This document shows positions 22,216-57,324 of a stretch of 64,000 nucleotides of DNA, in pieces. Origin of the DNA: Selaginella moellendorffii (Eukaryota; Plantae; Lycopodiophyta); contig NW_003314304.1 of NCBI RefSeq assembly GCF_000143415.4, positions 1,499,351 through 1,563,350 of the forward strand. Reading direction: 5' to 3'. Positions within the stretch are counted from its first letter, which is position 1, and each line of letters begins with the position of its first letter. The notes under the pieces are model-generated. The model made no database searches. It was not told where the DNA came from and worked only from the letters and a program-made list of their open reading frames with translations. A program made the position numbers and the translations under genes.

Positions 22216-22339
22216 TCACTAGAGTTTGGCAATTTTACTCTAGCTACTACAATTTTTCCATTGTTGATACTCACTGTAGCTTCATTTAACTCCACACTTT
22301 TTTATTTGATTAGAGATGTAAAGTTTTGTGTTATGTTCT

Positions 22340-27149: not shown

Positions 27150-27259
27150 TATATAAAGCATATTTATTTACCTTCATTTTGCTAAACCACCTCATAAAAA
27201 TATAGATTAATGATCTGCTTTAGAATGGTGTTTGTTAAATAAAATAAAAAATTTAAATG

Positions 27260-30200: not shown

Positions 30201-31076
30201 CTTAATGCAAATGCCACTCTGAAATGCCTGTTCCCACCCTTCCTTGCCAATGTGGTTATCTTCGATGACTAACTCTTCCACCCTGCACTCCTGACTTGCC
30301 AGATCCCTACTCAATTTCCCAAATCCTTCCACTGTCATCCTGTTCCCCAGCAATTGGAGACGTTTCAAGTTGTTTCCTGGTTTCCTAAGGAGTTGGCTAA
30401 GGAGAGTCTCTGGGTTCCCAACCCTGTACAACCAAAGCTCTGTCAAGCAGTCGAGCTGAGCAAAGGCCAACTCAAGCTCCTGAGGTGGTGTGAGGATGTC
30501 TTTGCCTCGCCAATCGAAACGTAGCCCTTTCAAGACCTTGAATTCCTGTGTCATCGTCAGTAGCTTTGCAAACCTCTGCACCTCAATCTGCCAAATATCC
30601 TGTCCCTGCTGAGGAGGAGCAATGCCCTCTGCCACCCTTTGCATTCGATCACTGGGAATGCCCAACCTACAAGCGACCCTGGCAGCGAAGTGGATGAATC
30701 TGATGTCGAGCTGTGGTACCAAAGCGGCCTTGAGAATGTCAATGTGAGCAGCAGCAGCAGCAGCAGCAGACGAACTGCCATCACCAGGAGCATCTCCCAC
30801 ATCCAGAGCCCTGTCTAACCTGGGCGGATTTGAAATGCACCAGTTGAGCACACCAATCAGATCCTCCTCTGTGCCTCCAAACCCCTCAACGGTAGCACTC
30901 ACCTCATCAACAAACTCACCTTTGGATGCGTCAAGCGCCTCCAGCCTCCAGACAAGCTCCCCACAATTAAACTGAATCGCATTGAAGTGCCGCTTGTTGC
31001 CCCGCTTCGCTGCGAGAGCCTCCTTGATCTCCTTGACAGAGTCACAGCGGATCCACACTCGTCGCTCCTCCTCCAT
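27260..31076 (-). pseudogene. TORNADO1-like LRR-Roc-COR gene, copy A, broken into a 346-aa N-terminal ORF and an 833-aa Roc-COR ORF
   Basis: Near-identical to 49126-53421, but ~0.7 kb of LRRs is replaced by filler (~29892-30105, largely AT-rich) and there is a small deletion at ~29817. Confidence 0.85.
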
Positions 31077-31172
31077 GGAAGTTTGCCCTAGATCGAGTGA
31101 TCATGAGTAAACTTCTCCCAGCTGTGGATAAGAAAGTAAGCACGAGTTAGTTTAGGGTTTAGAACAGATAAA

Positions 31173-33089
31173 ATGGGGAAGAAGGGGAAAGGGAAAAGAG
31201 AAGACCGAGCGAGTTCGTCGCCACGACAAGGTGTTAGACGAGGATGATATCGATGCGATCTCTGGCCAAAGACTCTCAATTGTTTTCCTTTTTGTCAGTG
31301 AAGGGGCAGTGGAGAGCACGAGTAAAAAGTGAGCTGTAATGTAAGAGTTAATTTAGGAATTAAACGGAAAGGACAAGACCATAAACAAACATAAAATGAT
31401 TCCATTTGGTGGATTTTATGACACGCTGAGGGAAGAAAGGTCGGCTGTTTCAGCAGTGTAAATGTTTAGTATTGAATTTTTGACACAGGTACTTCAATAA
31501 TCTTTAAGTGCTGGATTTAGACGATTATAAGGTTTGTTTCTGTCGCTCATCGTTCTTCCTTGTTTTTTAACAACTAAACTGATTTCCTTTTGCAGTGGCA
31601 AGAGATAAAACCCAAGCTTGGAGCTGCCTGGCCTTCAGCTGGAACTGGTTCTCAGCTTGCTGTTTATTTAGATGAGGTATTTGTCTACTAAAAGTATAGT
31701 TTTGCGTGTTGTGAACATTTTTTCTTTTCTAGATTTTCTTGTACGGTGGCTATTTCAAAGAGCCTGTGCTTGTTTTACATTCTCGTTTGGAGTTTTAGTT
31801 TTTCAATGTGTTTTGTGAAGGTGAAAAAATCCGGTATGGCTCCTGGCCAAGAGCAGGATTTTTGTCCACATCTTGTTTGGTGGTGTAGTTGATGCTGATG
31901 AGTACGGTTTCAATGCATGCGTTGGAAAAACTAATGTCTTTTGCAGGTGATTCCCTGCACAGCGTTTTTATGATCGAGATGTATATGCTTTCCAGATGGT
32001 TTGTATCTCGTCGATTTTTTTAAAATTATCTAAACACCATCGCTCGCAGGTATCCTTTGGAGCTTCTCAAGCCAAAGAGCCTAAAGATTAAGGTATGGCA
32101 ATCTGAGATTGTGTAGTGGTTAAGTGTGCATCCAAAGCAGAGGAAAGTGGTTGATCCAAATGTGGAAAATGCGTCTCAACGTTGAGCGTTCGGCTTGAAG
32201 GTTGTTGCCTTGTGGAAGAATGAATGCTGGAATGGTCGTTGGAAAGGATACTTTATTTCTGTATGGAGGTATGAAAGAAGTCGGCAAAAAAAAAGTGACA
32301 CGACGACCTTTCCTCGCTGGACCTTCGATGTGTGGAAGTGCATTATTGAGGTTAGTATGATCGAGCCATCATCCAGCCTCATACTAATGTCTCAAGCAGG
32401 AAACACAAAGCGCGTGGATTGAAGCTAGTAAGGAGAAAGGCGAAACTGATGGTGACAACAGTGATGCTGGATCGATTAATAAAGGAAAAGACGAAGAGGA
32501 CGATGACGAGGTAGTAAAAAAGAAGGATGTAAGAAAACTTGTCTGTTTCCTTTTGTGTTCTAGGATGCAGTGGAGTCACTGTGAAGAGGCAGCTGCTATT
32601 CTTAGGGGCGAAGGCAAAAAGGTGACACAGAAAGCACGGAAATTAAAGATTGATCCGAGCTGGGCCTGGCTGATTCCCAACAAACACTTTTGGTGAGTGC
32701 TGATAGTAGTTCATCTTCCTGTTTTGTTATTGATTTGTCTTTCAGCCTGGAGAAACGCTGAGAGATTTTTTCTCTTGGACGATCATGTATTGGCAAATGG
32801 CACCTTACGATCACACCCAACACACTGGAAAGGTGACAACGCAGGTTTTCTTTCGCTCGTTCTTCATGCTCTATGCATCTATCAGGAGCTCAGGAAGGAT
32901 GGATTTGACTTGGCAAAGACACGCTACAGAGAACTTAAAACCCGTCCTTGACAAGGTAAAGTGGTGTTTTAAGAAGGAATCCTCACAACAGCATTGTTTG
33001 ATTTGCAGCTCGCGAGACTTGAAGCCGACCACAACGCCGAAGAGGAGGCTACCAAACCTTCCAAAGAGCGCAGCAAGAAGAAAGGATAA
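31173..33089 (+). pseudogene. KLHDC4-like kelch/DUF4110 pseudogene, copy A
   Basis: MGKKGKGK...DEDDIDAI, GGFYDTLRE, YGGYFKE, PCGRMN, PGETLRDFF, ELRKDGFDLA; deletions and frameshifts. Confidence 0.8.
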
Positions 33090-33174
33090 GGTCCGTGATC
33101 TCTGAAAGTTCTAGCTGAAAATTAAATGAATAGATTACAGTTATTCCCAGAGGTATGGTGAGTGCTTTCCTTTT

Positions 33175-34419
33175 CTAGAGGCAATGCCATTGACATGAAA
33201 CCACTAGTATACAATCTCTGCGTCCTATCATCAATGGTGATAGAAGGTTAATTAATAAGGACGATCCGCATGAAATGGATATCCTGCTCTTACCCAGGAT
33301 AAAGTTTATATTTCCATGATTGCTCGCAGAGTGTATGGGCCTGAGATATGCCATGGCTTGCTTTCGGTTGCCTTTCGTAAAGTGCAGAGTGAACACTCTC
33401 TCTACGCGGTCCATAAACTTTACTACCTGTAGTGCATTGGAGCAATGAAATCCCATCAGCAAGACCCCCAAAGGAAAATTTCTTCACACCTTGTCCGACG
33501 TTGCAAAGTGAGAGTTTTCGACCATCTTGAGGTAACTGCCAGACTCCAGTCACCTGAAAATTTAAAAAAGCTTTTTAGAAGTCTGCAGTAATTTTCCATT
33601 TTCCATAAGTACCTTGTCATATTTCTTGCGGATCCTGACGAATGCCATCATGTTCAAGGAGCTGCCAAGTAAGTTTTCAACACTTTGAGAACATGGATCA
33701 ATCGTATAGAGGTCATTCACCTCAAGTTTCTTAGGAGTCGAAGCCCACGATAAAATTCGACAAAGGCCGTCTGGAGCATCTTGGCTGCTCGCTGAACCTT
33801 TCCTTTGTTACCGGGGCTCCCCTTCAAGCTCTGAGATTCGTCATCTACAACATGGCAGAGATCAAACGATTCCAAGTTAAGTGCTACAGATTTAGAGGCT
33901 GCTATAACAAACCTTGCATAACGATGAGCTCTTGCATTTGGATGTGAAGTTGCTGTGCTTGAGCATCGTACTCGTCTTCCTTGCATCTAAAAAACTTGTC
34001 CACTTTGTTGAGCTGATCGTCAAGGCCGAAAAAGAAGCTCTTTTCGTGATCCGATCGAGTTCCAAACAGCTCCGTCTCGTAAAAATCCTTGCCATCTGCA
34101 ATTCTCCTCTTGTGCACAACCTGACCGTATTGAAGAGTTTTGTTTCGTCTTTACAGTCCAGAACATCCATGGATGTTTCCGAGGATATGGATTGTTCGCA
34201 GCAGCTGCTCAGGATGGCGCTGGGATCTTGCAGCAAGTTTTGAAGCTTGCTCTTGTCAACCGAGAAGACATTTGGATCGAACACCTTGTGCTGCTGGTTC
34301 TTGGTATGTAGGATCTGGTTTTTGATTCTCTTGACAACTTTCTTGAGCTGCTTGTAGTCGCAGTACTTCACCCACTCTGGGACGAGCTGGCCCTCCAGCT
34401 GCTTCTGGAACTTCACCAT
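33175..34419 (-). pseudogene. PHO1: PHO1-family fragment (SPX domain, truncated at the start of the TM/EXS region), copy A
   Basis: MVKFQKQLEGQLVPEW, LDDQLNKVDKFF, AFVEFYRGLRLL, SLNMMAF, FTKGNRKQAMAYLRP. Confidence 0.85.
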
Positions 34420-39229: not shown

Positions 39230-41600
39230 AAGAATTTCCTTGGAATTATGTGACACTAAGCTTGGCATTGATGTTTATATCCAAGACTTTGGGTTGAGGC
39301 TCACTCTAGATGAAAAAGTGGATGAGAGTAAATGTTACTTACATGACTAAGAGTTCTAAGTTATTAGTAGTGGCATTAAACTCTCCAAGGTGTAACTTTT
39401 AGTCCAAAAGTCCAATTTGACAATTTTACTCTAGCTACTACAATTTTTTCATTGTTGATACTCACTGTAGCTTCATTCAACTCTACACTCTTTTACTTGA
39501 TTAAAGATGTAAAGTTTTGTGTCATGTTCTAGAATTTTGTCTATAGCTACAAGACCATAAATTTATCCATAAATGGATTGATATTACTATAAATAATTAA
39601 AGAGAACAATTTGAGAGACAATCAATGGAGTTCAAATATAAAGGGAGGGCTCATGAATAAAAATGCATCTTATTTTTCAATCAGTATGTGTTTTGGGATA
39701 TTTAGGGTTCAATGTTCTTGGGTTTAAGTAAAATATTAGGATGGGTGACTTTCTGGGAAGTTTAAATTTAGGAGTTTACATTTCATATTAGAAAGGTCTT
39801 GGGTTTAACTCTATTAGTTGACTTAGAGGAATCACATCACATATTAATTAACATTTAGCAGGTTTAATTTGCTGCAACTAAGCTCGACCTAAGGGGTAGG
39901 GTGTCAAGAGAATGGGGCTCTCGACTTCTATTCATGAGGGCATAAACTTACAGAGAAGCGTGGTAGATTGTAGGCAACCAAAGAGAATGACTTAAAAAAT
40001 GATCCATGGGGTTTAAATATAGAGGAAAAAGGCCTATGAATAAACATGCACCCCCTTTTCCAATTGGTCAATGGTCATATTTGGGGTTAAGCATCTCTAG
40101 GCTGGGTGGGAAGTCCAAATTCAAGAACTTACAATTACTTCAATGCAAAGGTATAGTTTTCAACTTCTCTCTCTTCCTTTCATATTCTTTTTTTTGTTTT
40201 GCACTATGTAGTGAGTGAAATGCTTTCACTTGTAAGTTTCTCGCAGGTGCGTGAATAAGACTTGATTAAATCTTATAACCTGCTTTTCCAAAGTTACATT
40301 TAAGATGGCCGAGTGAGCAGTGTGATGTGCTTTTACAATCAAGTGAATAGTGTCTTGACTTCTGCTAATCAAAGTTTGCTTATGGATATAATGTAAAATA
40401 GGTGGGGATGCAATAGGTTTGTTCATTTTTCTCCTAAAGAAAAATCATTCTTTTACTTCTTGTTAAATATATAGTTTTTGATTGTGATGTTCTTCACGTT
40501 TTTTTGAAGGGTGTAACATATGCTCCCTCAGCCAAAGATGTAATTGTTGATTCTATATTATAGGTAAAAGTTTGATAATTAGGATTGTTGCAGGTTTCAA
40601 TCTTAATTTTGATACCAATTTTTAAAGTTTTACCAAGTTTATTTTAAATTAATAAGTTTAAAAATTTTTCTTGACAATCATGAGAAGTCAACACTTTAAG
40701 TTGGAAAGATCACAAAGGTTAACCTTGACTATATAGTATCCAATTTTATTACAACTAAAATGTAGCTTGGATTATTCAATGATAATCTAAACACTTAGCC
40801 ATATGGAGATAAAATGATAATTATCAGCAACTTGCTCTAGATATTGCTTTCTAAGGAATTGTTCTTTTAAAAAACAATGGATTACTATTTTTATTCACAA
40901 TCTTGAAAATTGTGGCTCTTATAAAAAATGATGTAAATATAACATATATGATATTTAGAAACTACAAATGTGAAAGATAAGTTTCTTCTCAAAACTCTTT
41001 AAATGTTACTTATGGTTTTATTGGAGAAATGTTATACAAGTATGTATCACTTTTGCAAAGCATGTAAATCAATAGCAATAACATCCTTTATTCATAGTAC
41101 TTCTTTCAAGAATGCAATTTCAATTCATCTCCAACATTTCAAATGCAACCACTTGTCCTATTATTCTTATGATCACTACTTTTTGTTGATATCTTAACTT
41201 TCAAGGACAACCCATGAATCTCAAGTGTTATTTGGTTTGGATATTTTAGTTAGTCCAAAGGTGCTACTCTCACTCATGTTATTTTTGGAACATAAAATCT
41301 AAGTATTCCTTCTCTTCCTTTCTTTCTTTATAGTACAAAAATTGAATATAAAATTAAGTGGTCACTTGGTAAATACTTAGTACCACGAGGCATCCATAAA
41401 TGTTTCCATGTTGGATATGAAAATGAAATACAATCCACTATTGATATCTAAGGAAAAGCTATCAATTTTAAATAAGGTTACTAACAACTTTAGTGATGGA
41501 TTGTCCTAATCAACTTATTTGTATAAGTTTCTTTTAACACCAACAAAGCTTTCTTTCAAGAGCAAAAGAGGAAACTCTTGAGATTGTCCAATTGTAAAGA
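39230..41600 (+). pseudogene. BXL: GH3 beta-D-xylosidase pseudogene, copy B, retaining extra 5' exon sequence
   Basis: CDTKLGIDV..RLTLDEKV N-terminal motif plus the motifs seen in copy A. Confidence 0.75.
39588..40133 (+). mobile_element. Decayed full-length Cassandra TRIM (LTR 39588-39780, internal region, LTR 39969-40133) with ATTAC TSD
   Basis: Aligns to 43883-44475; ATTAC at 39583-39587 and 40134-40138. Confidence 0.8.
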
Positions 41601-43882
41601 GTAACAAAGATTAATCCAATCACTTACAAAATGATCTATAAATTTATAACAACATTTTGCCCAATCTCAGCAAAACCATTAGTAAATCAAAGTTCTAACC
41701 AACTTTTCATCTTTCCTTGATAATTTAGCTCCACTCGACTAGTATATAGAGCCCCAAGTTGAACAATGTACTTTCAAGATGGTCCTCTTTAACAAGTTCC
41801 ATATATAAATAATATAGTGACTTACCCTTTCCTCTCTTGTGAATTATTGTTTAAAGAGAGTTTGTTTCTAATTCACTTAAATTTTCCCCTTCAGAAACCA
41901 TTTAGTTTGGCATAAAATCTTAGCAACCCAATACTAAATACTAGCCCAAAACTTTGAGAAGAATATATCAACTAGTATATTAGTGATGATTTGAAGCTTG
42001 TTTTGCCAATTTACAAGCTATGATAAACGATTCAGATATTGGTTCTCTAAATGAGGATGGGATAGAGATTGGGAGTAAGCCTAGGCAAACATCTCTAATC
42101 CAAACTTTTCCATTTTGCTCATAAACTTGATTAGCTTTGCAAAGGTTTCGATAGAGTTTGTTTTCAAATTTTTGCATGTTATAAATGTTTATCAAGGCGA
42201 TGTAAATAGGAGTACACTACAATTATGGCTTGTCTTTTTTGTTATGATGGTGGTGATCGCAACCATCACCATGCTTTCGGCATCGTTATAAATGATTAAA
42301 TTTTCTTTTTTTACTTTAAGATCATCTAAAGGAGTCTCACTCATAATCTTTATAGGCCCTGATATTAATTTAAGTGTTTGTTAACCCTCAGATGTGTTTT
42401 TGCAACCACATCAACTTTGTACTTTGCTCTATGTGTCTAGTCCCACTTTGAATACCTAAAGGGCTACATAACCTCTCGGAAAGTCCAAATTTAAAAACTT
42501 ATATTTAGTATTAAAGAAGTCTTAAGTGTGACTCTATTAGTTGATTAAAAGAATTATACCACATGTTAAAATTGATATTTAATAGGTTTAGTTTACTCCA
42601 ATTGGGCTTGACTCGACGGGTAGGGTGTTAAAAGAGCAAGGCTCTTAGAAAATCTGCAACTTTCAACTTCTATTTACGAGAGCGTAAACTTGCAAAAAAG
42701 CATGATGGATTATAAACAATAAAAAAAAATGACTCAAAAATTATTAATATTGTTTTAAATATAAAAATGTACCCTTTGTTCCAATTAGTTATAAGTCTTT
42801 GGGTATTTGAGATTAAGCATCTTTAAATAATACGAGGTTGAATGATATTTTAGAAAGCTTAAATTCAGGAGATTATAGTGTCATAAACAATATAAGTTTA
42901 TGTTTGTAAAGAACATATCAAGAAAGAAAAAATTTTAAAATTACATAACCTTTTAAAAATGAAATATTTACTAGAATGCTAGAAATAAATATTTGGAGAG
43001 CCTTTTCATTAGAACTACTCCCAAATAACACTTGATGTGTTGCATATGAGTTCACAGTGAAAAATATCTTTATACTTCATTTTTAATAGAATTATAAGTG
43101 GTGTTTAATGCATATTTTATATTTTCTAAAAGATATTTGCAAACACTTATAAAGAATTTGCTGTTAAATTATTGTCATTCAAGCACTTGCTTACAATAGT
43201 AAAAGTTCAATACAATGTTTGATTTTATAGGATGGCATATATGTATAATTGAGGAGAGTAAACAAATTTTTATATGGAGTTTAGTAAGTAAATAGAATTG
43301 TGTATAATAACAATTTTGATAAGTTTTTAAAGTGTAGTTTGTAACATCTTTTAACTAAACATTGATTCAAAAAATAGGTTGAAGTTGGTAAAGATAATAT
43401 AAAGTTATCTTTAACAATATGTGATGATAAATAACAATTAAACATATATATTTAGTTTTGAAATGCACTATCTCAAAAGGTTTATTAATGTCAATTGAAT
43501 TCATTTTTAGAATTGTTTTACTAAAGATGCCAAAATAAAAAATGCCGCAAACATAAAATCATTTAAGTAGCTTTTCTTTAAAGCATTCAATACTGGAACA
43601 TCAAAATAAATATGAAAAAATATTTTCAAGCAATATGCAAAGATACCTTATCAACTTATATCAGGAAATGTAGCATAATCATAGTAAAAATAATATTCTG
43701 CAATAGTTATATTAATATAGAGGATGTTTGATTTATCATTGCTTTGCCAAATAGCTCAAAAATCAATATAATTAATGATTTATTTTAAATGCCCTACATA
43801 GTCTCTGTTAGATTAAACTAAAAACATAGATATATATCAATGTAAAATACCTTTGTAAATCCATACTGTTTTATCATCCAAG

Positions 43883-44923
43883 TGTAAGCAACCAAAGGGA
43901 ACGACTCGAGAGACGATCCATGGGGTTCAAATATAGAGGGAAAGGGCCCATGAACAAGAGTGCACCCCCTTTTCCAATCGGTTAAGGGTCTTGGGATAGT
44001 TGGAGTTAAGCGTCCTTGGGTTTGAATAGTACTGGGCTGGGTGACCTCCCGGGAAGTCCAAACTCAGGAGCTTACATTTGGTATCGGAGCGGTCTCGGGT
44101 CCGACTCTGTTGATTGGCTAGGGGAATCGCACCACATGTTGATTGACATCTGGCTGGTCCAGTTTGCTCCCGTTGGGCTCGACCCGAGGGGTAGGGTGTC
44201 AAGAGAGCGAGGCTCTCGGGAGAGCTGCGGCTCTCAGCTTCCGTTCACGAGGGCGTGAACTTGCAAGGAAGCGTGGTGGATTGTAAGCAACCAAAGGGAA
44301 CGACTCGAGAGACGATCCATGGGGTTCAAATATAGAGGGAAAGGGCCCATGAACAAGAGTGCACCCCCTTTTCTAATCGGTTAAGGGTCTTGGGATATTT
44401 GGGGTTAAGCGTCCTTGGGTTTGAATAGTACTGGGCTGGGTGACCTCCCGGGAAGTCCAAACTCAGGAGCTTACATTTGGTATCAGAGGGGTCTCGGGTC
44501 CGACTCTGTTGGTTGGCTAGGGGAATCACACCACATGTTGATTGACATCTGGCTGGTCCAGTTTGCTCGGGGAATCACACCACATGTTGATTGACATCTG
44601 GCTGGTCCAGTTTGCTCCCGCTGGGCTCGACCCGAGGGGTAGGGTGTCAAGAGAGCGGGGCTCTCAAGAGAGCTGCGGCTCTCAGCTTCCGTTCACGAGG
44701 GCGTGAACTTGCAGGGAAGCGTGGTGGATTGTAAGCAACCAAAGGGAACGACTCGAGAGACGATCCATGGGGTTCAAATATAGAGGGAAAGGGCCCATGA
44801 ACAAGAGTGCACCCCCTTTTCCAATCGGTTAAGGGTCTTGGGATAGTTGGAGTTAAGCGTCCTTGGGTTTGAATAGTACTGGGCTGGGTGACCTCCCGGG
44901 AAGTCCAAATTCAGGAGCTTACA
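43883..44923 (+). mobile_element. Tandem Cassandra-type TRIM array with three 194-bp LTRs (43883-44076, 44282-44475, 44730-44923)
   Basis: TGTAAGC...GCTTACA terminal inverted repeats; tRNA-iMet PBS TGGTATC(A/G)GAG after each LTR; purine-rich tract before LTR2 and LTR3; 5S rRNA-like core. Confidence 0.9.
44003..44059 (+). promoter_or_regulatory. 5S-rRNA-derived Pol III internal control region (A box-IE-C box) in the LTR; repeated in LTR2 and LTR3
   Basis: AGTTAAGCGTCCTTGGG..TAGTACTGGGCTGGGTGACCTCCCGGGAAGTCC versus plant 5S AGTTAAGCGTGCTTGGG..TAGTACTAGGATGGGTGACCTCCTGGGAAGTCC. Confidence 0.85.
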
Positions 44924-47900
44924 TTTGGTATCAGAGGCGGTGGTTCGTTGACTATAAGGAAAAACCATAACGTCGGACCCTTCGGCAGGGACTGAGGCAA
45001 AACCAGACAAGGTCGAACAGACTGAAGTGGAATCAGTCCCTCAAGCAGTTCCCAAGTACAAACCAAAGCCCCCACCAGTCTTCAAGGGAGTGAATGACTA
45101 TAAGGTGGTGGAGGATTGGTTTTACGATATGGAGGACTACTTCCGAGCGTTGCGGTTACCGAGCTCGGAGAAGGTCCCATGTGCAAAACCATACTTGGCA
45201 GATAATGCCAAGTCTTGGTGGAGAACAACGGAGGCCAACGAAGGACCGGTGGTCACTTGGGACATGATGAAGGCGAGGATCCGCGCAACATATGTTCCTC
45301 CGAATGCCACTCTGCATCTGAGGGATGAACTGAGTAGGCTGAAGCAGACTGGAACCATCCAGGAATATGTGATCCAGTCCCTAACTCAAAGTTACTCATT
45401 ACACGAGCAACTTTGGTAGAGAGTCGTTCGCGACATCTACTAGCCCTCCGAGGGAAGCTCGGAGGTAGCTTTGTTAAGATCCTTATTGACACGGGTGCTT
45501 CGGATAATTTTGTGGCTGCAGACATAGTCCGGCAAGCCGGACTAACGGTGCAGCGGCTAGGCGAACCAAGGACTATAGAGTTTGTTCAAGGTAGCCAAAG
45601 CACCGATGAGGTACTTCGACAAGCGAAAGTCGAAGTAGGGACTTGGAAAGTAGACATGGATTTCACCGTGTTGGACATGGCGGGATTTGACGTGATCTTC
45701 GGAATGGATTGGTTCAATCGGTTCGTGGTAGCCCTACATGGACAAGGTAGGAACCTTGTGGTACTGGCGAATGCCCAAGGAAAAAGATCTAGGGTGGAGG
45801 CCCAGGATCTAAAGGTAGGGCAAAGCAAGGCCAAAGAATCCTGCTTAAACCTGGTGTCCACGAGAGGACAACTCACTAAAGGAACTAAGGCAGCCTTTTT
45901 GTGCTTACTCTCGGTGAAGAGTGACAAAAAGACAAGAACGGAAGAAGTGCCTTTAGTGATCCAGCGAGTGCTGGACCAATTCCAGGATACCATGCCGGAG
46001 GAGCTACCGGCGGGGTTGCCCCCCGCACGACCGATAGAGCATAAGATTGAGCTGGTCGAGGGCGCAGAGGCGGTGGTTCGTCCACCCTATCGTTTGAACG
46101 AAAAAGAACTCAAGGAGCTCAAGTGCCAACTAGAGGAGTTGGTGGGCAAAGGGTATGTTAGGTTGAGCAAGTCGCCGTATGGGGCGCCGGTATTATTTGT
46201 GAAAAAGAAAGATGGATCTATGCGCATGTGCATAGATTACCGGTTGCTCAACAAATATACCAAGAAGAACAAGTACCCTTTGCCAAGGATTGAGGACCTG
46301 TTCGATAGGTTGGGAAAGGCAAAATACTTCTCGAGGATTGACCTAAGGTCAGGATACTACCAGATCAGGGTAGCTAAGGGAAGATGGTATGGACAGCGGA
46401 ATGCGAGGCGGCATTCGTCCACCTCAAAGGGAAGTTGAGGAAGGCTCCGGTGTTGGCATTACCAGACTTTGGTAAGGACTTTGAGGTAGACACCGATGCT
46501 TCGGACTTTGCGTTGGGCGCAGTTTTGAAGCAAGACAACCATCCAGTAGCGTTCTTCTCGAAGAAGCTGGACAAGGCTCAACAGAAGTGGCCTGCCCACG
46601 AGAAGGAATTGTTTGCGGTGGTCAAGGCGCTCAAGGAGTGGCGACACTACCTTGGGAGACACTTCAAGGTTTACACGGACAATGTGGCAACGAAACACTT
46701 CTTGTCACAACCCGACCTGAGAGGGAAACAAGGTCGGTGGGCCAATGCCTTGGCCGAGTTTGATTGCGAAATTCTGTACAAGCCTGGGAAGAGCAACATC
46801 GTAGCAGATGCGCTAAGTCGAAAAGCGAGCTTGAGGTTGGCGATCTCCAGCGCAACAGCAACCTTCTGGGACGATGTGCGGACAGCATATGAGAATGATG
46901 GTCTAGCACAAGAAGTGTTGTTGAGGAATCTGGAGGCGCGGGAAGCTCACCAGAGAGGTGAGCTGCCAACGGAAGAGAAAACGGGCTATGCGGAACGCAA
47001 CGGACTCATTTATTACAAGCAAACGAGGGTGTATGTTCCAGAAGGGGGACTAAGGAAGGTAGCCTTAGAAGAGTGTCATGACGGACCTCTTGCGGGACAC
47101 GGCGGAGTGCCCAAGACGATGGGCTTACTCAAGAGGAAGTACCATTGGCCAGATATGGCTAAGGACGTCCAAGACTATGTAAAGACATGCCCAATATGTC
47201 AGCAAGTCAAAGCCGTGACGAAGGCTAGTGGGGGCTTGTTGCAAAGCATCCCCATTCCAGATCGTCCGTGGAAATGTCTCACGATGGACTTCATCACGGG
47301 ACTACCCCCAAGCGAGGGGTTCGATGCGATATTCGTGGTGGTGGACCGATTTTCAAAGATGGCACATTTCATACCCACCACAACGGACGTGGATGCGGAA
47401 GGTGTGGCGAAGCTGTTCTTCGAACAAGTGGTTCGAGTGCGGGGAAGGCCGGAAGAGATTATCTCAGATCGAGATAAGATCTTCACTAGTAGGTTCTGGA
47501 GGACACTCCTAGAACAGTATCGCACCAAGTTGAAATTCAGCACAGCCTATCACCCACAGACAGGTAATGGGTATTAAGTCAAGATTGATGGCACTAACAC
47601 TTCTTGACAGACGGACAAACGGAAAGGGTGAATAGGCAGCTGGAGGATTATTTGTGATGCTATGTCTCGGGAGACCAGACCGACTGGGTAAGTCATTTGG
47701 GACTTGCGGAAATGTGTTATAACAACTCACCACATTCGAGCATCGGGGTGAGTCCATGGGAAGTCATCAATGGGCGAGCTATTGAAGGTCCTGTGGAACT
47801 CGGCGTGGCCGAGTATCATGGAGAGTTACCCGCAGTGGAGGCATTCACGGCGGAAAGACTCAACATTTGGAATCTAGTGAGGGATTCCTTGGAACGGGCT

Positions 47901-48440
47901 CAACAAAGGCAAACTAAGTACGCAAACCAAAAGCGTCGGGATGTGGAGTTCCAAGCTGGGGAGAAGGTGTGGCTGAACACCAAGAACCTCAAGCTGCCAA
48001 GTGGGATCAGCCGGAAGTTGACCCAAAGGTAAAAATGCATGTATTCCTGTAAATGAATTGATCTTGAGTTCCTTGAGCAGGTTCGCGGGGCCTTACGAGA
48101 TTGAGGCTCGAATCGGTAAAGTGGCTTACCGACTCCGACTTCCTCGAGAGATGGGGAAGATGCACCCAGTGTTCCACGTGAACTTACTCAAGCCGTACTT
48201 TGAGGATCCGCTTCGCAAGGACCAAGTAAGACCTCTACCCGAGGTTATCCAAGGGGAAGAGGAATACGAAGTTGAGGCCATCCTCAATGCGCGCAAGAGC
48301 AAGCGACAAGGACACGAGGTGAGAGAGTTCCATGTGAAGTGGAAAGGATTTCCACACTGCGAAGCAACATGGGAACCGGAGGAGAACCTAGCGAACGCGC
48401 GAGATCTAGTGGAGGAATTTCTGCAAGGCAGAACTCTATG
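44924..48440 (+). mobile_element. Defective chromoviral Ty3/gypsy gag-pol body: partial gag, protease, RT with catalytic core deleted, RNase H, integrase with 2 introns, chromodomain; no 3' LTR
   Basis: Gag [21 protein letters not shown]; PR LIDTGAS; [21 protein letters not shown] joined to [10 protein letters not shown] at ~46380; RH TDASD; IN HHCC, MDFITGLP, SDRD, HPQT|DGQTERVN, GPY; chromodomain EYEVEAIL..VKWKGF..TWEPEENL. Confidence 0.92.
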
Positions 48441-48495
48441 TACTTATGCAAAGTTCAATTAAAAATATCAATTTGAGAAGTTGAGCAAAAGCATA

Positions 48496-48887: not shown

Positions 48888-49125
48888 CTGAATTCAACAC
48901 TGAAATGAACTTGAAACATTAGAATAAATAGAAAAGAATACTTTGGAGCTATAATGCAAACTTACCTCATTAACTTCTGCTATAAAATATACCTCAATCA
49001 TACCAAAGACATATAGTAATAATTATATAAAACATTTTATTTACCTTTGTCTTAGTAAACCATTTATATAGATTGATGATCTGCTTTAGTATGATGTTTG
49101 TTAGATAAAATTAAAAACTTAAATT

Positions 49126-52100
49126 TTAAATACCTTTGCAAACCCATATTTTTCTTTTGTGTAGAATTGTGGGATGAAGAGCAAAATAAGTCTCCATAAT
49201 CGTCTCCTGTTTTTCTTCTTTCCCAACTTTAGTTGTCACTAGCTTAAATATCTCATACAAATCTTCTGCTTTAGGATTTGTAGTTAGCTTGCTTTTGAGA
49301 AGACATGAATCCAAAAAGCTTATGAGCCTTCCCTTGGTTTCATCCACCATTGCATTCACTATCTCTCCAGCACCAGCAAAATGTCCTCCAACTTTGGCCC
49401 CAATAAATAATAGGATCAATGTATGTTTAAGTACTGGAGCAAATTTCTTGAGCCAGTTTGGTGGGATATTCAATTCAACACCTACAGAATTCTTCACTTG
49501 ATGACCTTTATCTCCCTGAGTATAAGATCCTTCATGCCATTCACACAAGTAGTGAAGTTTAACAGGTGTTCCCAGTATTTTGCTATAATTTTTCCACCTA
49601 TTATTCTCATCGAGAATATATGGATATTTTGGGCAATCTGTTTCCAATTTCAATAATACTTGCAAACACCTTGTATGGATTGCATTCACTTTATCCATGA
49701 TAGACTTTAGTCCATTTTTGAGCTCGTTAAAGCTTACTTCAATGTTATCAAGTTTTGTATCCAACTTGTCAAAACAATTCTCCATTTTATCAAGCCTTTT
49801 ATCAAAATATCTAAGGATTGCATCAAGTTTTGGGTCTTCAACATTCGGAAACTCAACAACATCTAATGATGCTTTGGGAATTGTGACTTCTCCAACCTCC
49901 TCATAGTCCTTCAAAAGTTCATGAAGTTCAACAAACTTATTTACCATTTCATGTTTTTGCTCATTGGGCATCAATAGCTTGGCCAAAGCATTCTCATCTG
50001 AGACTTTCAAATCATTATTCACATCCCAGCTCTCTGCTTCATGTGAATAATTCCAAGTGTGGGAGTATTCTAGACCTCTTTCTTTTGCTTTACATTTGAC
50101 TTGCTTTAGTGGACAAATAACTGAAGCCCATAATTCTAATTTGCCCACCTTATTTAGTATCTTTCTCCATACATAACCACGTCTCATCACATTTTCTTCA
50201 ATTTCCAAAGATGGGCAATCCTCCATACATACCCCAATAATGCAATTTCTAATTTTTTCCATCCATCCTTCAGCTTCCTTTTCTAAATCCGGCCTTGGTG
50301 TATTCTCTACCTCTTTTGGGTAGTAAATGATGATATCAATCCATTGCCTATCTTTCCAATTGTCTGTGTCTCCCCCAACTCTCACAATTATCTCGATAAG
50401 GTTTTTTTTCAAAGCCACCCATCCATTCCCAAGCCTGAAACCTTTCTTGCTTAATCTGTGAAGTTTAACTTGGATCTTTGTGAAAATACTTGCAGGAAAC
50501 AATTTCAAGTCCTTGTCTTTGCATTCAAACCTCCTGCCCCAGTAGTTGTGGTTTTTTTGAGTGTTAATTGACAATAAATATCCTGGAGGTGAATAGTCTT
50601 CTTGCAATAGTGTTGGCATTATCAACTCTTTGGGTAAGTTATGCCAATTCCCATCCCATGTATCATCCCAAGGCAATATCACTCCCATCTCATGGAGCAC
50701 TCCAAGAATGTACTCCACTATTTTGTCTTGGTTCCCACATTGTTGTTTCAACTGATGTTTAACTTGGTGTGTATCCATTCGACTTTTGAGTTTGCTGGTC
50801 TTCTCTGTAGGTATGAAGAGCTGCACCACATCCTTGATAAACCATTGGACATCTAAGATGACAAATTGAGACACAATGTCGTCCTCTTCATGTCCCAAGC
50901 CAAAGTAAATTGCATCACCAGAATCATGTAGAAATTGCAAGACGAATTTGAGAACATTCTCGGAACTCCTGTGAGGCAAGAGGATTTTGCCAACTTTATC
51001 TAGGGGTATGACCTTCTTGTGACTTGGATCTTGTACCAATTTCCTCTTTGCTTTGAGACATTCCTGTGGTATTTGTTGCTGGGCTGACAGCAGTTCTTCC
51101 AAGCAACTCCCCAACATGGTTTTTATCCCCCTTAAATCTTTCACTTGAGTGGCCACCACCTTAAAACAAAAGTCATTCCCAAACTCAAGTACTTGCCCAT
51201 AGCCTTTGTCGGAGATAATTGCAGAAACCACCTCCTTTGGGTCAAAGTCGGGTTCTGGAGTGAAAAAGTTCAAGGCAATCAAGACCCTGGGCTTCCTTTT
51301 GGGTGAGGCTGATTGATGTGAAGCGATGAACCTCAGCCAGTAAACCAAATTCTGCTTGAAAACCTCACAATTGCCATCCTCCACCTTGCATACGATCAAG
51401 AAGAGATCCTTCTCACTTCCTCTGAGAAAGTACTGGTGGAAAGCATGGAACTCTTCCTGTCCAGCCAGGTCGCAAATGAGCAGCTTTTGTTTGGTGGTCG
51501 CATAGACAAGTGGTTGCAGCTCAATGCCTGCTGTTGAAGCATGCGTTTGGAGACATGATGGAAACCAAGACACTCTGCGGCAGAGGTTTTTTTTTATTGT
51601 GGTCTTTCCAACCCTGCTAGCACCACACAAGAAGAGCTTTGCTGTTGACGGGTTGTCAAAGTCTTTGAATGCACTCTGCTGGAAGATTGCATTCCGCTCT
51701 AAAAGACCAGAACACCTCTGCTTGAAAGCTTCAGAAGCTTCGGAATCATTGCCTATATCAAGCTCTTCCACGAGGCTTTGGTAGTTTTCCTCCAGGGCAG
51801 CCAGAATTTGTCTCTTCTGTGCATCACTTCTAAGAGAAGGAGCCCTGAATTTGAGCAACTTGCATTTTGGATCTCCCAGCAACTGGCAAAGGTCTTCCAG
51901 GTTTTCAAAATTTCGCTGAGATATTCTCAAGTCTTCAATGCTGCTTCCCAAAAGGCACCTCCATGGCAGCTCCGACTCACATGACAAAGCTTTCAGATAC
52001 TTGCAGCTGGTGATAGCTTTCCAAAAGAGCTCCCCATTCGTGATTTTGCAGCTCCATATATCCAAATGCTCCAGTTGGCTCTTCTCTATGCCCTCGGCAA

Positions 52101-53421
52101 ACTCCAACGTTAACTCATCTTCTCTACTACTCCATATTTCCAAATGGCGCAGCTTAAAATGTGGACTTGAGAGGGCTGACCACAGACTGCTGTCACAGAC
52201 CACTCCTCCTCCCTCGTTGCGAAAAGAAAGTTTAAGCTTGATCAGCTTGCAATTGGGATTTTGTAGCGCTCTGCCCAACCATCCACCACCATCACCTGGA
52301 TAAAGTGTAACGATGAGTTCCTCCAAGCCACACTTAGCGCTGCTCAGGGCCTCACCCAGGCCCGTTGCATTGCTCAGGTCCTCACTTCGGCAATCTAAAA
52401 CTGACAGGCTGGTGCCCTCCTGAAGAGCCTTGCATACCCATGGCAACACTGCAGGATCAGTTTCCCAAAGTAGGTATAGTCTTTGCAGTGAACAGTTTGG
52501 ACTCGTGAGTGCCTTGAAGAGTGCTTCACCTGCCCCCTCTGGAAACAGTGCCTTCAGTTCTATTAGCTTATTGCAAATGCCATTCTGAAATGCCTGTTCC
52601 CACCCTTCCTTGTCAATGTCCTCATCCAGAACGATGGCTAACTCTTCCACCTTGCACTCCTGACTTGCCAGATCCCTACTCAATTTCCCAAATCCTTCCA
52701 CTGTCATCCTGTTCCTCTCCAACCAGAGATGTTTCAAGTTGTTTCCTGCTTTCCTAAGGAGTTGGCTAAGTAGAGTCTCTGGGTTCCCAACATGCCACAA
52801 CTGGAGGTCTGTCAAGCAGTCGAGCTGAGCAAAGGCCAACTCAAGCTCCTGAGGTGGTGTGAGGACGTCTTTGCCTTCCCAATTGAATATTAGCAATTTC
52901 AAGACTTTGAATTCCTCTGTCATCATCAGTAGCTTTGCAAACCTCTGCACCTCAATCTGGCCAATATCCTGTCCCTGCTGAGGAGGAGCAATGCCCTCTG
53001 CCACCCTTTGCATTCGATCACTGGGAATGCCCAACCTACAAGCGACCCTGGCAGCGAAGTGGATGAATCTGATGTCGAGCTGTGGTACCAAAGCGGCCTT
53101 GAGAACGTCAATGTGAGCAGCAGCAGCAGCAGCAGACGAACTGCCATCACCCACATCCAGAGCCCTGTCTAACCTGGGCGGATTTGAAATGCACCAGTTG
53201 AGCACACCAATCAGATCCTCCTCTGTGCCTCCAAACCCCTCAACGGTAGCACTCACCTCATCAACAAACTCACCTTTGGATGAGTCAAGCGCATCCAGCC
53301 TCTCCCCACAATCAAACCGAATCGCATTGAAGTGCCGCTTGTTGTCCCGCTTCGCTGCGAGAGCCTCCTTGATCTCCTTGACAGAATCACAGATGATCCA
53401 CTCTCGTCGCTCCTCCTCCAT
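49126..53421 (-). CDS. TORNADO1-like Roco protein (novel N-terminal domain, RI-type LRRs, Roc GTPase, COR, coiled coil), ~1431 aa in a single ORF
   Basis: P-loop GASRVGKTT, G3 ICDLAGQEEFHAFH, COR FLHDSGDAIYF/ILDVQWF, coiled coil, TRN1-like LHYLCE and KVGGHFAG, terminal WVC. Confidence 0.88.
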   Translation of the reverse strand: MEEERREWIICDSVKEIKEALAAKRDNKRHFNAIRFDCGERLDALDSSKGEFVDEVSATVEGFGGTEEDLIGVLNWCISNPPRLDRALDVGDGSSSAAAAAAHIDVLKAALVPQLDIRFIHFAARVACRLGIPSDRMQRVAEGIAPPQQGQDIGQIEVQRFAKLLMMTEEFKVLKLLIFNWEGKDVLTPPQELELAFAQLDCLTDLQLWHVGNPETLLSQLLRKAGNNLKHLWLERNRMTVEGFGKLSRDLASQECKVEELAIVLDEDIDKEGWEQAFQNGICNKLIELKALFPEGAGEALFKALTSPNCSLQRLYLLWETDPAVLPWVCKALQEGTSLSVLDCRSEDLSNATGLGEALSSAKCGLEELIVTLYPGDGGGWLGRALQNPNCKLIKLKLSFRNEGGGVVCDSSLWSALSSPHFKLRHLEIWSSREDELTLEFAEGIEKSQLEHLDIWSCKITNGELFWKAITSCKYLKALSCESELPWRCLLGSSIEDLRISQRNFENLEDLCQLLGDPKCKLLKFRAPSLRSDAQKRQILAALEENYQSLVEELDIGNDSEASEAFKQRCSGLLERNAIFQQSAFKDFDNPSTAKLFLCGASRVGKTTIKKNLCRRVSWFPSCLQTHASTAGIELQPLVYATTKQKLLICDLAGQEEFHAFHQYFLRGSEKDLFLIVCKVEDGNCEVFKQNLVYWLRFIASHQSASPKRKPRVLIALNFFTPEPDFDPKEVVSAIISDKGYGQVLEFGNDFCFKVVATQVKDLRGIKTMLGSCLEELLSAQQQIPQECLKAKRKLVQDPSHKKVIPLDKVGKILLPHRSSENVLKFVLQFLHDSGDAIYFGLGHEEDDIVSQFVILDVQWFIKDVVQLFIPTEKTSKLKSRMDTHQVKHQLKQQCGNQDKIVEYILGVLHEMGVILPWDDTWDGNWHNLPKELIMPTLLQEDYSPPGYLLSINTQKNHNYWGRRFECKDKDLKLFPASIFTKIQVKLHRLSKKGFRLGNGWVALKKNLIEIIVRVGGDTDNWKDRQWIDIIIYYPKEVENTPRPDLEKEAEGWMEKIRNCIIGVCMEDCPSLEIEENVMRRGYVWRKILNKVGKLELWASVICPLKQVKCKAKERGLEYSHTWNYSHEAESWDVNNDLKVSDENALAKLLMPNEQKHEMVNKFVELHELLKDYEEVGEVTIPKASLDVVEFPNVEDPKLDAILRYFDKRLDKMENCFDKLDTKLDNIEVSFNELKNGLKSIMDKVNAIHTRCLQVLLKLETDCPKYPYILDENNRWKNYSKILGTPVKLHYLCEWHEGSYTQGDKGHQVKNSVGVELNIPPNWLKKFAPVLKHTLILLFIGAKVGGHFAGAGEIVNAMVDETKGRLISFLDSCLLKSKLTTNPKAEDLYEIFKLVTTKVGKEEKQETIMETYFALHPTILHKRKIWVCKGI

Positions 53422-53500
53422 GGAAGTTTGCCCTGGATCGAAGGGGCAGTGGAGAGCACGAGTAAAACGTGAACCTTGCCAGCAGTGGACTAAAGAAAGT

Positions 53501-53665
53501 ATGCCAGCTGTGGAAGAAAAGCAAAGCATATGCCAGCTGTGGAAGCAAAGCATATGCCAGCTGTGGAAGCAAAGCATATGCCAGCTGTGGAAGCAAAGCC
53601 ATCGTATGAAAGCAAAGCGGACAGTACAAGCAAGAGAAAGCAAAGCGGACAGTACAAGCAAGAGT
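53501..53665. repeat. 24-bp tandem repeat x4 plus a ~28-bp repeat x2 upstream of Roco B
   Basis: ATGCCAGCTGTGGAAGCAAAGCAT x4; AAGCAAAGCGGACAGTACAAGCAAGAG x2. Confidence 0.85.
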
Positions 53666-53689
53666 TAATTTAGGTTTTAGGGTTCTTCG

Positions 53690-56196
53690 AGCAAGACGGC
53701 CAAGGCGGCGGAGAAGCGAGCTCATCGCGACGAGAAGAAGGTGTGGGACGAGGATGATATTGATGCGATCTTGGTAAGCAAAGCTCTGGCCAAAGACTCT
53801 CAATCGTTTTCCTTCTTGTCAGGCTAAACTCCACGAGGAGAAAGCAAAGAAGAGCGAAATTCATGTCGATGAGAATGTAGCAGCTCCTTCACCACAATGC
53901 AATTGCTCTGTGCGTAAGAACTCGATTGAAATCTCCACTCTGGAAGCTCACATTCTCTAGAATTCTTCTTTCCTTGCGTTTCAGGTGACTGTAAATCCCG
54001 TCAAGGACACTGCGCTGATCGTCTATGGAGGTGAATACCAACAATGGTGACAAGGTTTGTGGTTAGTTTTGCTACGGTGATTTAATCTTCGTGTTTGCTA
54101 TGCTAGACTTACGTTTATGGTGATCTCTACCAATACAACATCGAGAAGAACGAGTGGAAGCCTGTCACCAGTCCAAACCCTCCTCCCCGAGAAGCGCTCA
54201 CCAGGGGGTTGCGTGGAAAAACTGGCTCTTCACTTTTGGTATGATGTATTTTTCCAGGACTTCTCTTGATTTTGGCAGTGTAGGTGGTGAATTCGGTTTC
54301 ATCACTATAAGCTGTGTTTCTAGCTGACTTACAAGAGAGTTCTTGCAGGATTTATGGAGACTGGATTTAAACACAAATATGTGTGGCTGGAGCAGCTTCA
54401 AACTAAAAGGCTGTCCAGGTGCTCGTTCCGGACATAGATTGGTATGTATTGCGCTTCTAAACATAATCTTTATTTTTTTCTTTCTTGCCACAGAAACATA
54501 AACTTATTCTATTTGGTGGATTTTATGACACGCTGAGGGAAGAAAGGTCGGCTGTTTCAGCAGTGTAGATGTTTAGTATTGAATTTTTGACACAGGTACT
54601 TCAATAATCTTTAAGTGCTGGATTTAGACGATTATAAGGTTTGTTTCTGTCGCTCATCGTTCTTCCTTGTTTTTTAACAACTAAACTGATTTCCTTTTGC
54701 AGTGGCAAGAGATAAAACCCAAGCTTGGAGCTGCCTGGCCTTCAGCTGGAACTGGTTCTCAGCTTGCTGTTTATTTAGATGAGGTATTTGTCTACTAAAA
54801 GTATAGTTTTGCGTGTTGTGAACATTTTTTCTTTTCTAGATTTTCTTGTACGGTGGCTATTTCAAAGAGCCTGCCCCTGACAAAGATCAATCCGACAAAG
54901 CTGTAGTGCTCGCAGATATGTGGACGTTAGATCCACGGATTGGGAGTGGGACAAGGTTTGCTTGTTTTACATTCTCGTTTGGAGTTTTAGTTTTTCAATG
55001 TGTTTTGTGAAGGTGAAAAAATCCGGTATGGCTCCTGGCTAAGAGCAGGATTTTTGTCCAGTACGGTTTCAATGCATGCGTTGGAAAAACTAATGTCTTT
55101 TGCAGGTGATTCCCTGCACAGCGTTTTTATGATCGAGATGTATATGCTTTCCAGATGGTTTGTATCTCGTCGATTTTTTTAAAATTATCTAAACACCATC
55201 GCTCGCAGGTATCCTTTGGAGCTTCGCAAGCCAAAGAGCCTAAAGATTAAGGTATGGCAATCTGAGATTGTGTAGTGGTTAAGTGTGCATCCAAAGCAGA
55301 AGAAAGTGGTTGATCCAAATGTGGAAAATGCGTCTCAACGTTGAGCGTTCTGCTTGAAGGTTGTTGCCTTGTGGAAGAATGAATGCTGGAATGGTCGTTG
55401 GAAAGGATACTTTGTTTCTGTATGGAGGTATGAAAGAAGTCGGCAAAAAAAAAGTGACACGACGACCTTTCCTCGCTGGACCTTCGAGCATTATTGAGGT
55501 TAGTATGATCGAGCCATCATCCAGCCTCATACTAATGTCTCAAGCAGGAAACACAAAGCGCGTGGATTGAAGCTAGTAAGGAGAAAGGCGAAACTGATGG
55601 TGACAACAGTGATGCTGGATCGATTAATAAAGGAAAAGACGAAGAGGACGATGACGAGGTAGTAAAAAAGAAGGATGTAAGAAAACTTGTGAAGAGGCAG
55701 CTGCTATTCTTAGGGGCGAAGGCAAAAAGCTGACACAGAAAGGACGGAAATTAAAGATCGATCCGAGCTGGGCCTGGCTGATTCCCAACAAACACTTTTG
55801 GTGAGTGCTGATAGTAGTTCATCTTCCCTTTTTGTGACTGATTTGTCTTTCAGCCTGGAGAAACACTGAGAGATTTTTTCTCTTGGACGATCATGTATTG
55901 GCAAATGGCACCTTACGATCACACCCAACACACTGGAAAGGTGACAACGCAGGTTTTCTTTCGCTCGTTCTTCATGCTCTATGCATCTATCAGGAGCTCA
56001 GGAAGGATGGATTTGACTTGGCAAACACACGCTACAGAGAACTTAAACCCGTCCTTGACAAGGTAAAGTGGTGTCTCAAGAAGGAATCCTCACAACAGCA
56101 TTGTTTGATTTGCAGCTTGCGAGACTTGAAGCCGACCACAACGCCGAAGAGGAGGCTACCAAACCTTCCAAAGAGCGCAGCAAGAAGAAACGATAA
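53690..56196 (+). pseudogene. KLHDC4-like kelch/DUF4110 pseudogene, copy B (lacks the ATG)
   Basis: KTAKAAEKRA..DEDDIDAIL, PSPQCNCS, LIVYGGEY, YGDLYQYNIEKNEW, RSAHQGVAWKN; frameshifts. Confidence 0.82.
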
Positions 56197-56259
56197 GGTC
56201 CGTGATCTCTGAAAGTTCTAGCTGAAAAATTAAATGAATACCGAGAGGTATGGTGAGTG

Positions 56260-57324
56260 CTTGCTTTCGGTTGCCTTTCGTAAAGTGCAGAGTGAACACT
56301 CTCTCTATGCGGTCCATAAACTTTACTACCTGCAGTGCATTGGAGCAATGAAATTCCATCAGCAAGACCCTCAAAGGAAAATTTCTTCACACCTTGTCCG
56401 ACGTTGCAAAGTGAGAGCTTTCGACCATCTTGAGATAACTGCCAGACTCCAGTCACCTGAAAATTTAAATAACCTTTTTAGAAGTCCGCAGTAATTTTCC
56501 ATTTTCCATAAGTACCTTGTCATATTTCTTGCGGATCTTGACGAATGCCATCACGTTCAAGGAGCTGCCAAGTGAGTTTTCAACACTTTGAGAACATGGA
56601 TCAATCGTATAGAGGTCATTCACCTGAAGTTTCTTAGGAGTCGAAGCCCACGATAAAATTCGACAAAGGCCGTCTGGAGCATCTTGGCTGCTCGCTGAAC
56701 CTTTCCTTTGTTGCCGGGCTCCCCTTCAAGCTCTGAGATTCGTCATCTACAACATGGCAGAGATCAAACGATTCCAAGTTAAGTGCCACAGAATTAGAGG
56801 CTGCTAGAACGAACCTTGCATAGCGATGAGCTCTTGCATTTGGATGTGAAGTTGCTGTGCTTGAGCATCGTACTCGTCTTCCTTGCATCTAAAAAACTTG
56901 TCCACTTTGTTGTGCTGATCGTCAAGGCCGAAAAAGAAGCTCTTTTCGTGATCCGATCGAGTTCCAAACAGCTCCGTCTCGTAAAAATCCTCGCCATCTG
57001 CAATTCTCGTCTTGTGCACAACCTGATCGTATTGAAGAGTTTTGTTTCGTCTTTACAGTCCAGAACATCCATGGACGTTTCCGAGGATATGGATTGTTCG
57101 CAGCAGCTGCTCAGGATGGCGCTGGGATTTTGCAGCAAGTTTTGAAGCTTGCTCTTGTCAACCGAGAAGACATTTGGATCGAACACCTTGTGCTGCTGGT
57201 TCTTGGTATGTAGGATCTGGTTTTTGATTCTCTTGACAACTTTCTTGAGCTGCTTGTAGTCGCAGTACTTCACCCGCCACTCTGGGACGAGCTGGCCCTC
57301 CAGCTGCTTCTGGAACTTCACCAT
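56260..57324 (-). pseudogene. PHO1: PHO1-family SPX-only fragment, copy B
   Basis: MVKFQKQLEGQLVPEWRVKYCDYKQLKK...FTKGNRKQA, then truncated. Confidence 0.85.

Follow-up and report, generated by a model that had tools for sequence, protein, structure and literature searches.

We analyzed a 64,000-nt stretch of the Selaginella moellendorffii genome on scaffold GL377608.1 (the window; window position plus 1,499,350 gives the coordinate in the record), which holds two copies, A and B, of a gene for a protein with leucine-rich repeats (LRRs) followed by the Roc and COR domains of the ROCO family. Our results support a birth-and-death array of such genes under diversifying selection, from which we infer an immune function and a GTP switch, and they make this LRR-Roco family credible candidates for receptors that are not nucleotide-binding LRR receptors (NLRs). 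To the explanation as a whole, a young, tandem, recombining family of cytoplasmic LRR-Roc-COR proteins with an NLR-like receptor role, we assign a probability of about 0.6.

Diversifying selection on the LRR domain

The initial annotation of the window compared A with B and described hypervariable positions in the LRR strands on nearly identical backbones, and its central observation is confirmed. The five pairs of A and B motifs that it quoted were all found exactly as written, and 34 of the 52 nucleotide differences in codons 254-396 fall within 27 of these 143 codons, at repeat positions 3, 5, 7, 8, and 9. Between A and B, repeat positions 5, 7, and 8 have reached saturation in nonsynonymous divergence (dN; 21.5 changes at 37 sites), while the other LRR codons have a dN of 0.08 and a synonymous divergence (dS) of 0.06; for the shared LRR part taken together, the NG86 method gave a dN of 0.134 and a dS of 0.090. 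The near identity of the backbones holds for the framework codons but not for the whole region, in which DNA identity is only 88.6%. The interval that had been singled out (51780-52930) is comparable with A only at 52474-52930, as A lacks LRR6-14 in the remainder. Of the two halves of the paralog comparison, B is intact and A is degenerate.

The broader prediction of ω (dN/dS) above 1 at exposed LRR positions was borne out when codon site models were fitted to LRR codons 241-660 of eight collected copies with our own Goldman-Yang implementation. Model M0 gave an ω of 1.59 for the LRR, and twice the log-likelihood difference (2ΔlnL) was 307 for M1a versus M2a, 308 for M7 versus M8, and 307 for M8a versus M8, with about 15% of the codons assigned to a class with ω≈11. 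Forty-four LRR sites had a posterior >0.95, and 30 of these were at repeat positions 5, 7, and 8, which account for just 45 of 407 codons (hypergeometric p about 1e-23). All but three of the selected sites (41/44) lie inside a predicted β-strand or no more than four residues after one, typically as i, i+2 pairs, which by the established LRR rule would place them on the concave β-sheet and β-α loop surface, as had been anticipated. In an alignment anchored on B, each repeat varies at only a few positions and is otherwise an invariant framework. Region averages calculated by NG86 for seven copies, which require no tree, gave a dN of 0.314 and a dS of 0.158 for the 75 codons at the canonical x positions (2, 3, 5, 7, and 8; chosen a priori), compared to 0.046 and 0.056 for the rest of the LRR. 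The corresponding values were 0.020 and 0.020 for Roc, 0.043 and 0.061 for COR, and 0.059 and 0.144 for the C-terminal region.

Several points weigh against reading these values at face value. The site models used naive rather than Bayes empirical Bayes posteriors and M0 branch lengths that were fixed up to a scale factor, with no PAML cross-check, and the concave placement comes from predicted secondary structure and the LRR rule, not from measured geometry. The assembly also holds two haplotypes, so that some of the “paralogs” are alleles. Recombination inflates the likelihood-ratio tests (LRTs) of site models, and the pairwise homoplasy index (PHI) test for recombination was significant (z −5.8). 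The LRTs of the other domains were significant as well, although much weaker (75 for the N-terminal region, 51 for Roc-COR, and 15 for the C-terminal region), and they set a rough scale for the background inflation. Selected sites of the N-terminal region (90/92 and 115/117) are in or beside two short strands and repeat the i, i+2 pattern of the LRR.

Because recombination was present and can inflate the tests, we added three further checks. When the LRR was divided into three blocks with separate trees, 2ΔlnL was 82, 116, and 89. When the set was restricted to six genes and columns within 3 codons of gaps were dropped, 2ΔlnL was 184 with an ω2 of 16, and 18 of 24 selected sites were at positions 5, 7, and 8. 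Finally, a tree-free comparison of 28 pairs found that dN at positions 5, 7, and 8 exceeded the LRR-wide dS by a factor of 5.2-12.6 in every pair (Fisher p ≤ 2.7e-8).

These checks bear on the alternative that there was no adaptive diversification at all and that relaxed constraint, gene conversion, and artifacts of alignment or recombination produced the pattern. Roughly half of the copies are degenerate, copy A among them is broken, ω is high everywhere (0.4-1.2), and recombination is significant, all of which would fit such an explanation. Relaxed constraint, however, cannot raise ω above 1, and the selected class has an ω of ≈11-16; moreover, the variable sites recur at positions 5, 7, and 8 beside codons in which dN ≈ dS ≈ 0.05, and B is both intact and expressed. 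Persistence of the signal in the intact-gene, gap-free set and in every tree-free pair answers the charge of artifact and rules out relaxed constraint alone. We regard this alternative as largely refuted and very improbable, and we conclude that diversifying selection on the LRR surface, very strong and periodic at β-strand and loop positions, is strongly supported.

Turnover and sequence exchange in the tandem family

The proposal of an expanded birth-and-death family also held in our sample, which comprised the window and eight loci fetched by way of annotated paralogs. It contains 14 copies or fragments, of which six are intact (B, P0002, P0003, P0004, P0006, and P0012) and the rest are mostly decayed by truncation, frameshift, or stop codons: two have a stop codon, five are fragments, and one runs off its locus. 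Annotated members of the family number at least 10 gene models, in addition to fragments; they share 83-90% identity and are spread over three scaffolds. One of the models, P0009 (an isoform of P0007), is a 21-kb chimera drawn across several decayed copies. Tandem clustering, birth-and-death turnover, exchange between paralogs, and ω>1 at exposed LRR positions, the R-gene-like properties that we looked for, were all found.

Roc is nearly invariant between A and B, as the initial annotation stated (about 4-6 differences in 153-170 codons), but the special constraint that this might imply is contradicted by the synonymous sites, which are equally invariant. Across the family, Roc has a dS of 0.01-0.02 and an ω of about 1, which rules out a Roc frozen by purifying selection; its near invariance is due to recent homogenization. 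The mechanism can be seen in P0012 (L008:9803-14329, GL377737.1), a clean chimera that switches parents inside Roc: at codons ~101-650, about 0.5% of its positions differ from B, and at codons ~800-1511 it is <1% different from P0006. The sensor and output halves have thus been reassorted through the homogenized center of the gene.

P0003 (L001:10001-14358, GL377608) and P0004 (L005:10001-14361, GL377709) share the same flanking genes and appear to be an allelic pair from two haplotypes. Divergence is 0.4-1.8% in 10 kb of flanking sequence but reaches 9.7% per 500 bp in the LRR part of the Roco gene itself, where it is concentrated in the LRR and C-terminal parts, and dN at positions 5, 7, and 8 is 0.45. 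We take this as independent evidence, from within one individual, either that diversity is maintained or that paralogs have donated sequence by conversion. An allelic counterpart of B, with flanks ≥99% identical, was not found among the fetched loci.

Copy A (27260-31076, minus strand) is probably a pseudogene, and loss of LRR6-14 together with a frameshift rules out that it is an intact paralog. Its N-terminal open reading frame (ORF; 30036-31076, minus strand, 346 aa) covers the N-terminal region and LRR1-5 and ends in a stop at 30036, with 81.6% protein identity to B aa 74-396. Where B encodes LRR6-14 in 682 nt (51792-52473), A instead has 217 nt of AT-rich filler, identified from the DNA alignment and by reading the sequence (29892-30107, minus strand). 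The Roc-COR-C-terminal ORF of A follows at 27260-29821 (minus strand), thrown out of frame with the N-terminal ORF by a 31-nt deletion beside 29817. The annotated model P0008 (1157 aa) spans these lesions with a single ~350-nt “intron” (REEA|ASFQQ). The same LRR lesion recurs in a fragment at each of two fetched loci (L004_frag and L008_frag), so that the A-type truncation either was itself duplicated or is present as alleles.

Both copies belong to a tandem unit of ~22 kb that is present twice in the window, and a segmental duplication relates 26539-34098 to 48891-57000 at 91-99% DNA identity. Between the two duplicated units lies a Ty3/gypsy-type retroelement (45413-48462) with protease, reverse transcriptase, RNase H, integrase, and a chromodomain-like tail, and its insertion partly accounts for their spacing. 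The Roco copies in the window and at the fetched loci are accompanied by pieces of SPX, Kelch/DUF4110, and EIN3 genes as part of the repeat unit. Such pieces (SPX, Kelch/DUF4110, and EIN3-like) occur at 17028-19589 and 56794-57324 in the window and also at L002, L003, L006, and L007. Several annotated models around the unit are chimeric, such as one joining EIN3_DNA-bd, S6PP_C, and SPX, suggesting that gene fragments travel with the duplications. AT-rich blocks with a GC content of 24-30% occupy 22001-28000 and 40001-44000 and are ~85% identical to each other by way of the duplicated unit. An assembly gap of 358 N (26792-27149) begins ~110 nt 3′ of the copy A stop and leaves the 3′ flank of A incomplete.

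Structure, domains, and plant relatives of copy B

Copy B (49064-53421, minus strand) is an intact LRR-Roc-COR gene with an uninterrupted reading frame. The ORF extends over 49126-53661 (minus strand) with its Met at 53421, leaving ~4.3 kb without interruption, and it matches P0001 (“protein TORNADO 1 isoform X1”) at 100%; P0011, in the same 90% cluster as P0001, is named “ROCO family protein” and “isoform X2.” Exon 1 (53421-49134), which at 4.3 kb holds the entire LRR region, is followed by the only intron, a terminal one of 53 nt (49133-49081), and by exon 2 (49080-49064), all on the minus strand. The plain ORF and P0001 accordingly diverge solely at the spliced C terminus. The intron has a tandem AAG|CAG acceptor, which would account for the length difference of one residue between isoforms X1 and X2. 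Upstream of the gene, Tandem Repeats Finder reported perfect repeats of 24 nt (3.4 copies) and 28 nt (2 copies) at 53477-53664; they begin 56 nt upstream of the start codon, in the 5′ untranslated region or promoter.

B is transcribed and spliced. Fragmented contigs cover it in four sequencing runs, and the RNA contigs take the distal acceptor of the intron. In runs X2 and X10, the products of two separate studies, contigs join 49134 to 49080, continue through 49080-49051, and have zero mismatches over 49134-49284. None of the runs is marked as RNA in its record, but X2 and X10 must hold transcripts, since their contigs cross the splice junction. Contigs of the conserved parts collapse paralogs, so that they speak for basal transcription only and not for a level of expression.

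The N-terminal region of B (52903-53421, minus strand; ORF aa 81-253) had no match in a Pfam search, and its AlphaFold2 (AF2) model has strands at P0001 residues 8-11 and 33-38 and helices at 52-173. The hypervariable LRR domain, which includes the interval discussed above, follows at 51682-52902 (minus strand; ORF aa 254-660) and consists, by its repeat register, of 15 repeats of the ribonuclease-inhibitor (RI) type, 19-31 aa each. The AF2 model of residues 1-590 (pLDDT 84.8, pTM 0.83) is a regular strand-helix solenoid, and the best Foldseek matches of the LRR model were ribonuclease inhibitor (TMt 0.60-0.64) and the LRR domains of NLRP proteins, supporting a predicted fold like theirs.

The Roc GTPase domain (51301-51639, minus strand; ORF aa 675-787) matched Pfam PF08477 with 41.3 bits against a cutoff of 27, and Roc chains of LRRK2 were the top PDB sequence matches (E about 1e-5). 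It retains G1 (GASRVGKTT), G3 (DLAGQ), and the switch I Thr. The COR domain (50362-51069, minus strand) comprises COR-A (ORF aa 865-1000) and an extension as far as about aa 1100. In B, COR-A (PF16095; E 6.5e-8) scored 33.0 bits, slightly below the cutoff of 35.3, and all eight listed family members carry a precomputed PF16095 assignment. B has two features of ROCO proteins, a Roc domain and a COR domain directly C-terminal to it. Pfam found no NB-ARC or NACHT match in B, in agreement with the earlier proposal that NB-ARC is not used, and the P-loop domain is a Ras-like Roc.

Two parts of the protein weigh against the explanation as a whole. One is the C-terminal region (49134-50361, minus strand; ORF aa 1101-1509), which contains a coiled coil and a conserved domain with Cys, Glu, and His residues and is presumed to be the output module. 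Within these last ~410 residues, some columns are invariant across homologs of lycophyte, fern, moss, and Chara origin. Pfam nevertheless returned nothing above cutoff for the region, the ESM Atlas gave no usable match, a PDB profile search produced only coiled-coil noise, and the AF2 model is poor (pLDDT 55.7); TIR, CC, and RPW8 likewise had no Pfam match in the output region. The other is the G4 motif, which in the family reads LNFF instead of the canonical (N/T)KxD, so that switching by GTP is not assured. Lycophyte, fern, moss, and Chara homologs have LN(F/I/L/Y)F, VNFF, CNPH, or MTHF at this position, and the aligned plant Rocos (P0013-P0025; P0001 residues about 700-720) keep G1 and G3 with NKxD replaced. 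Judged by these motifs, plant Rocos may differ from canonical Roc proteins in nucleotide preference.

A full-length search for relatives was saturated by LRR words and returned the eight family members only, so other relatives were collected in searches restricted to Roc-COR. Over this part, the nearest protein outside the family is another S. moellendorffii Roco with 43% identity, followed by Adiantum (28-37%), Chara (25%), and Ceratodon (23%); one angiosperm protein was recovered. The mosses Ceratodon and Sphagnum (P0025-P0054) and the fern Adiantum (P0014-P0023) each have many Roco paralogs, some of which are adjacent on one chromosome according to their locus tags. A FastTree of 48 plant Roco proteins, which is rough, midpoint-rooted, and biased in its sampling and does not include Arabidopsis TRN1, placed the S. 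moellendorffii family on a long stem within a clade of lycophyte and fern sequences (support 100).

We used these data to weigh the alternative that the genes are orthologs of Arabidopsis TORNADO1 (TRN1/LOPPED1) with a conserved role in developmental signaling and that variation in their LRRs is incidental. TRN1 is built on the same general LRR-Roc-COR plan, B and P0006 have received its name from NCBI (“protein TORNADO 1”), and the aligned plant Rocos have this architecture, together with a C-terminal domain, and the odd G4 in common. However, a family of at least 10 models that are 83-90% identical is not a single conserved gene, and its closest relative outside the family is already distant over Roc-COR. 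TRN1 is a conserved developmental gene, whereas the Selaginella genes are multi-copy, clustered, and fast-evolving, and they did not group with the sole angiosperm sequence, which the rough tree tentatively assigns to another clade together with mosses. We therefore consider orthology with a conserved developmental role improbable.

A candidate receptor family and its known counterparts

Framework, Roc, and COR are repeatedly homogenized by gene conversion or unequal crossing-over, and the family gains copies, loses them, and recombines them by swaps of sensor and output halves inside Roc. Several further steps would connect these observations to a receptor role. The variable LRR surface would bind ligands that change rapidly, in all likelihood molecules made or modified by pathogens. 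Binding would then be relayed through Roc-COR as a nucleotide-dependent module to the conserved C-terminal domain, and the family would in this way play an NLR-like receptor role in an NLR-poor species. The LRR sensor with its hypervariable predicted concave face is a feature that the family has in common with NLRs.

Diversifying selection could have been driven by something other than pathogens, such as recognition in reproduction or of self versus non-self, the control of selfish elements, or co-evolution with an endogenous family of fast-evolving ligands. The selection signal is silent on the nature of the ligand, and hyperdivergent alleles within one individual are also seen at allorecognition loci; fungal NLRs of similar evolution act in allorecognition (PMC13449251), and in angiosperms TRN1 acts in development (Cnops et al. 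2006, as cited in PMC11378527). Set against this are the decayed tandem arrays, the swapping of sensor and output halves, and the RI/NLR-type LRR, a combination most typical of immune clusters. In addition, only about 2 NLRs are listed for S. moellendorffii (PMC3782705), and the repeat unit, with its SPX, Kelch/DUF4110, and EIN3 pieces, shows no sign of a partner ligand gene. A non-pathogen driver seems unlikely to us, though it is the most serious of the rival explanations, and we favor recognition of pathogen-derived or pathogen-modified ligands.

Plant intracellular immunity is thought to be almost entirely NLR-based. A wider and more tentative idea, which we think possible but would not yet bet on, is that non-seed land plants have a Roco-based intracellular immune system parallel to NLRs that includes the moss and fern families. 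If so, the receptor would combine a sensor of hypervariable RI-type LRRs with a Roc-COR switch and a conserved C-terminal domain as executioner, and in NLR-poor Selaginella the Roco family would bear much of the load of specific recognition. The homogenized Roc would at the same time be a hinge for recombination, at which sensor and output halves enter new combinations, and the multi-copy Roco families of mosses and ferns would be the same system. Evolutionary hallmarks of R genes on a Ras-like Roc-COR module offer a concrete candidate to fill the NLR gap, would bring the LRR-ROCO hypothesis of brown algae into the green lineage, and provide a testable case of convergent receptor design built from an LRR sensor and a nucleotide switch. 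A new signaling or cell-death module could be what the conserved C-terminal domain represents, and for Roco biology, including that of LRRK2, naturally occurring LRR variants combined with a constant Roc-COR are a useful comparative resource.

Our literature search found no paper on Selaginella Roco genes. Evidence of the same type has led to the proposal that the brown-algal LRR-ROCO proteins of Ectocarpus and Saccharina are immune receptors (PMC3341825; PMC11378527). [quoted passage not shown] The algal genes diversify by shuffling of exons that each encode one LRR and by alternative splicing. In contrast, the Selaginella genes carry the N-terminal region, LRR, Roc, and COR in one exon and draw their diversity from point substitution and from gene conversion or crossing-over among tandem paralogs. 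The algal repeats are 23-24 aa long, unlike the 26-29-aa RI-type repeats of this land-plant lineage.

The Roc domain is comparable to those of LRRK2 and the Chlorobium Roco “Rab family protein” (PDB 3dpu/6hlu), with the same G1, switch I Thr, and G3 and with COR directly after it. The Selaginella family differs from animal and amoebal Rocos in having no kinase domain, a non-canonical G4, and a hypervariable LRR.

Plant NLR clusters show the same tandem arrays, birth-and-death turnover, and exchange between paralogs, the same ω>1 at solvent-exposed x residues of the LxxLxLxx strand, and the same hyperdivergent alleles against conserved flanks. They differ in their nucleotide-binding module, which is NB-ARC in plant NLRs, whereas the Selaginella family has a Ras-like Roc with COR and neither NB-ARC nor another STAND NTPase, and in their LRRs, which are plant-specific in the NLRs and of the RI/animal-NLR type in Selaginella.

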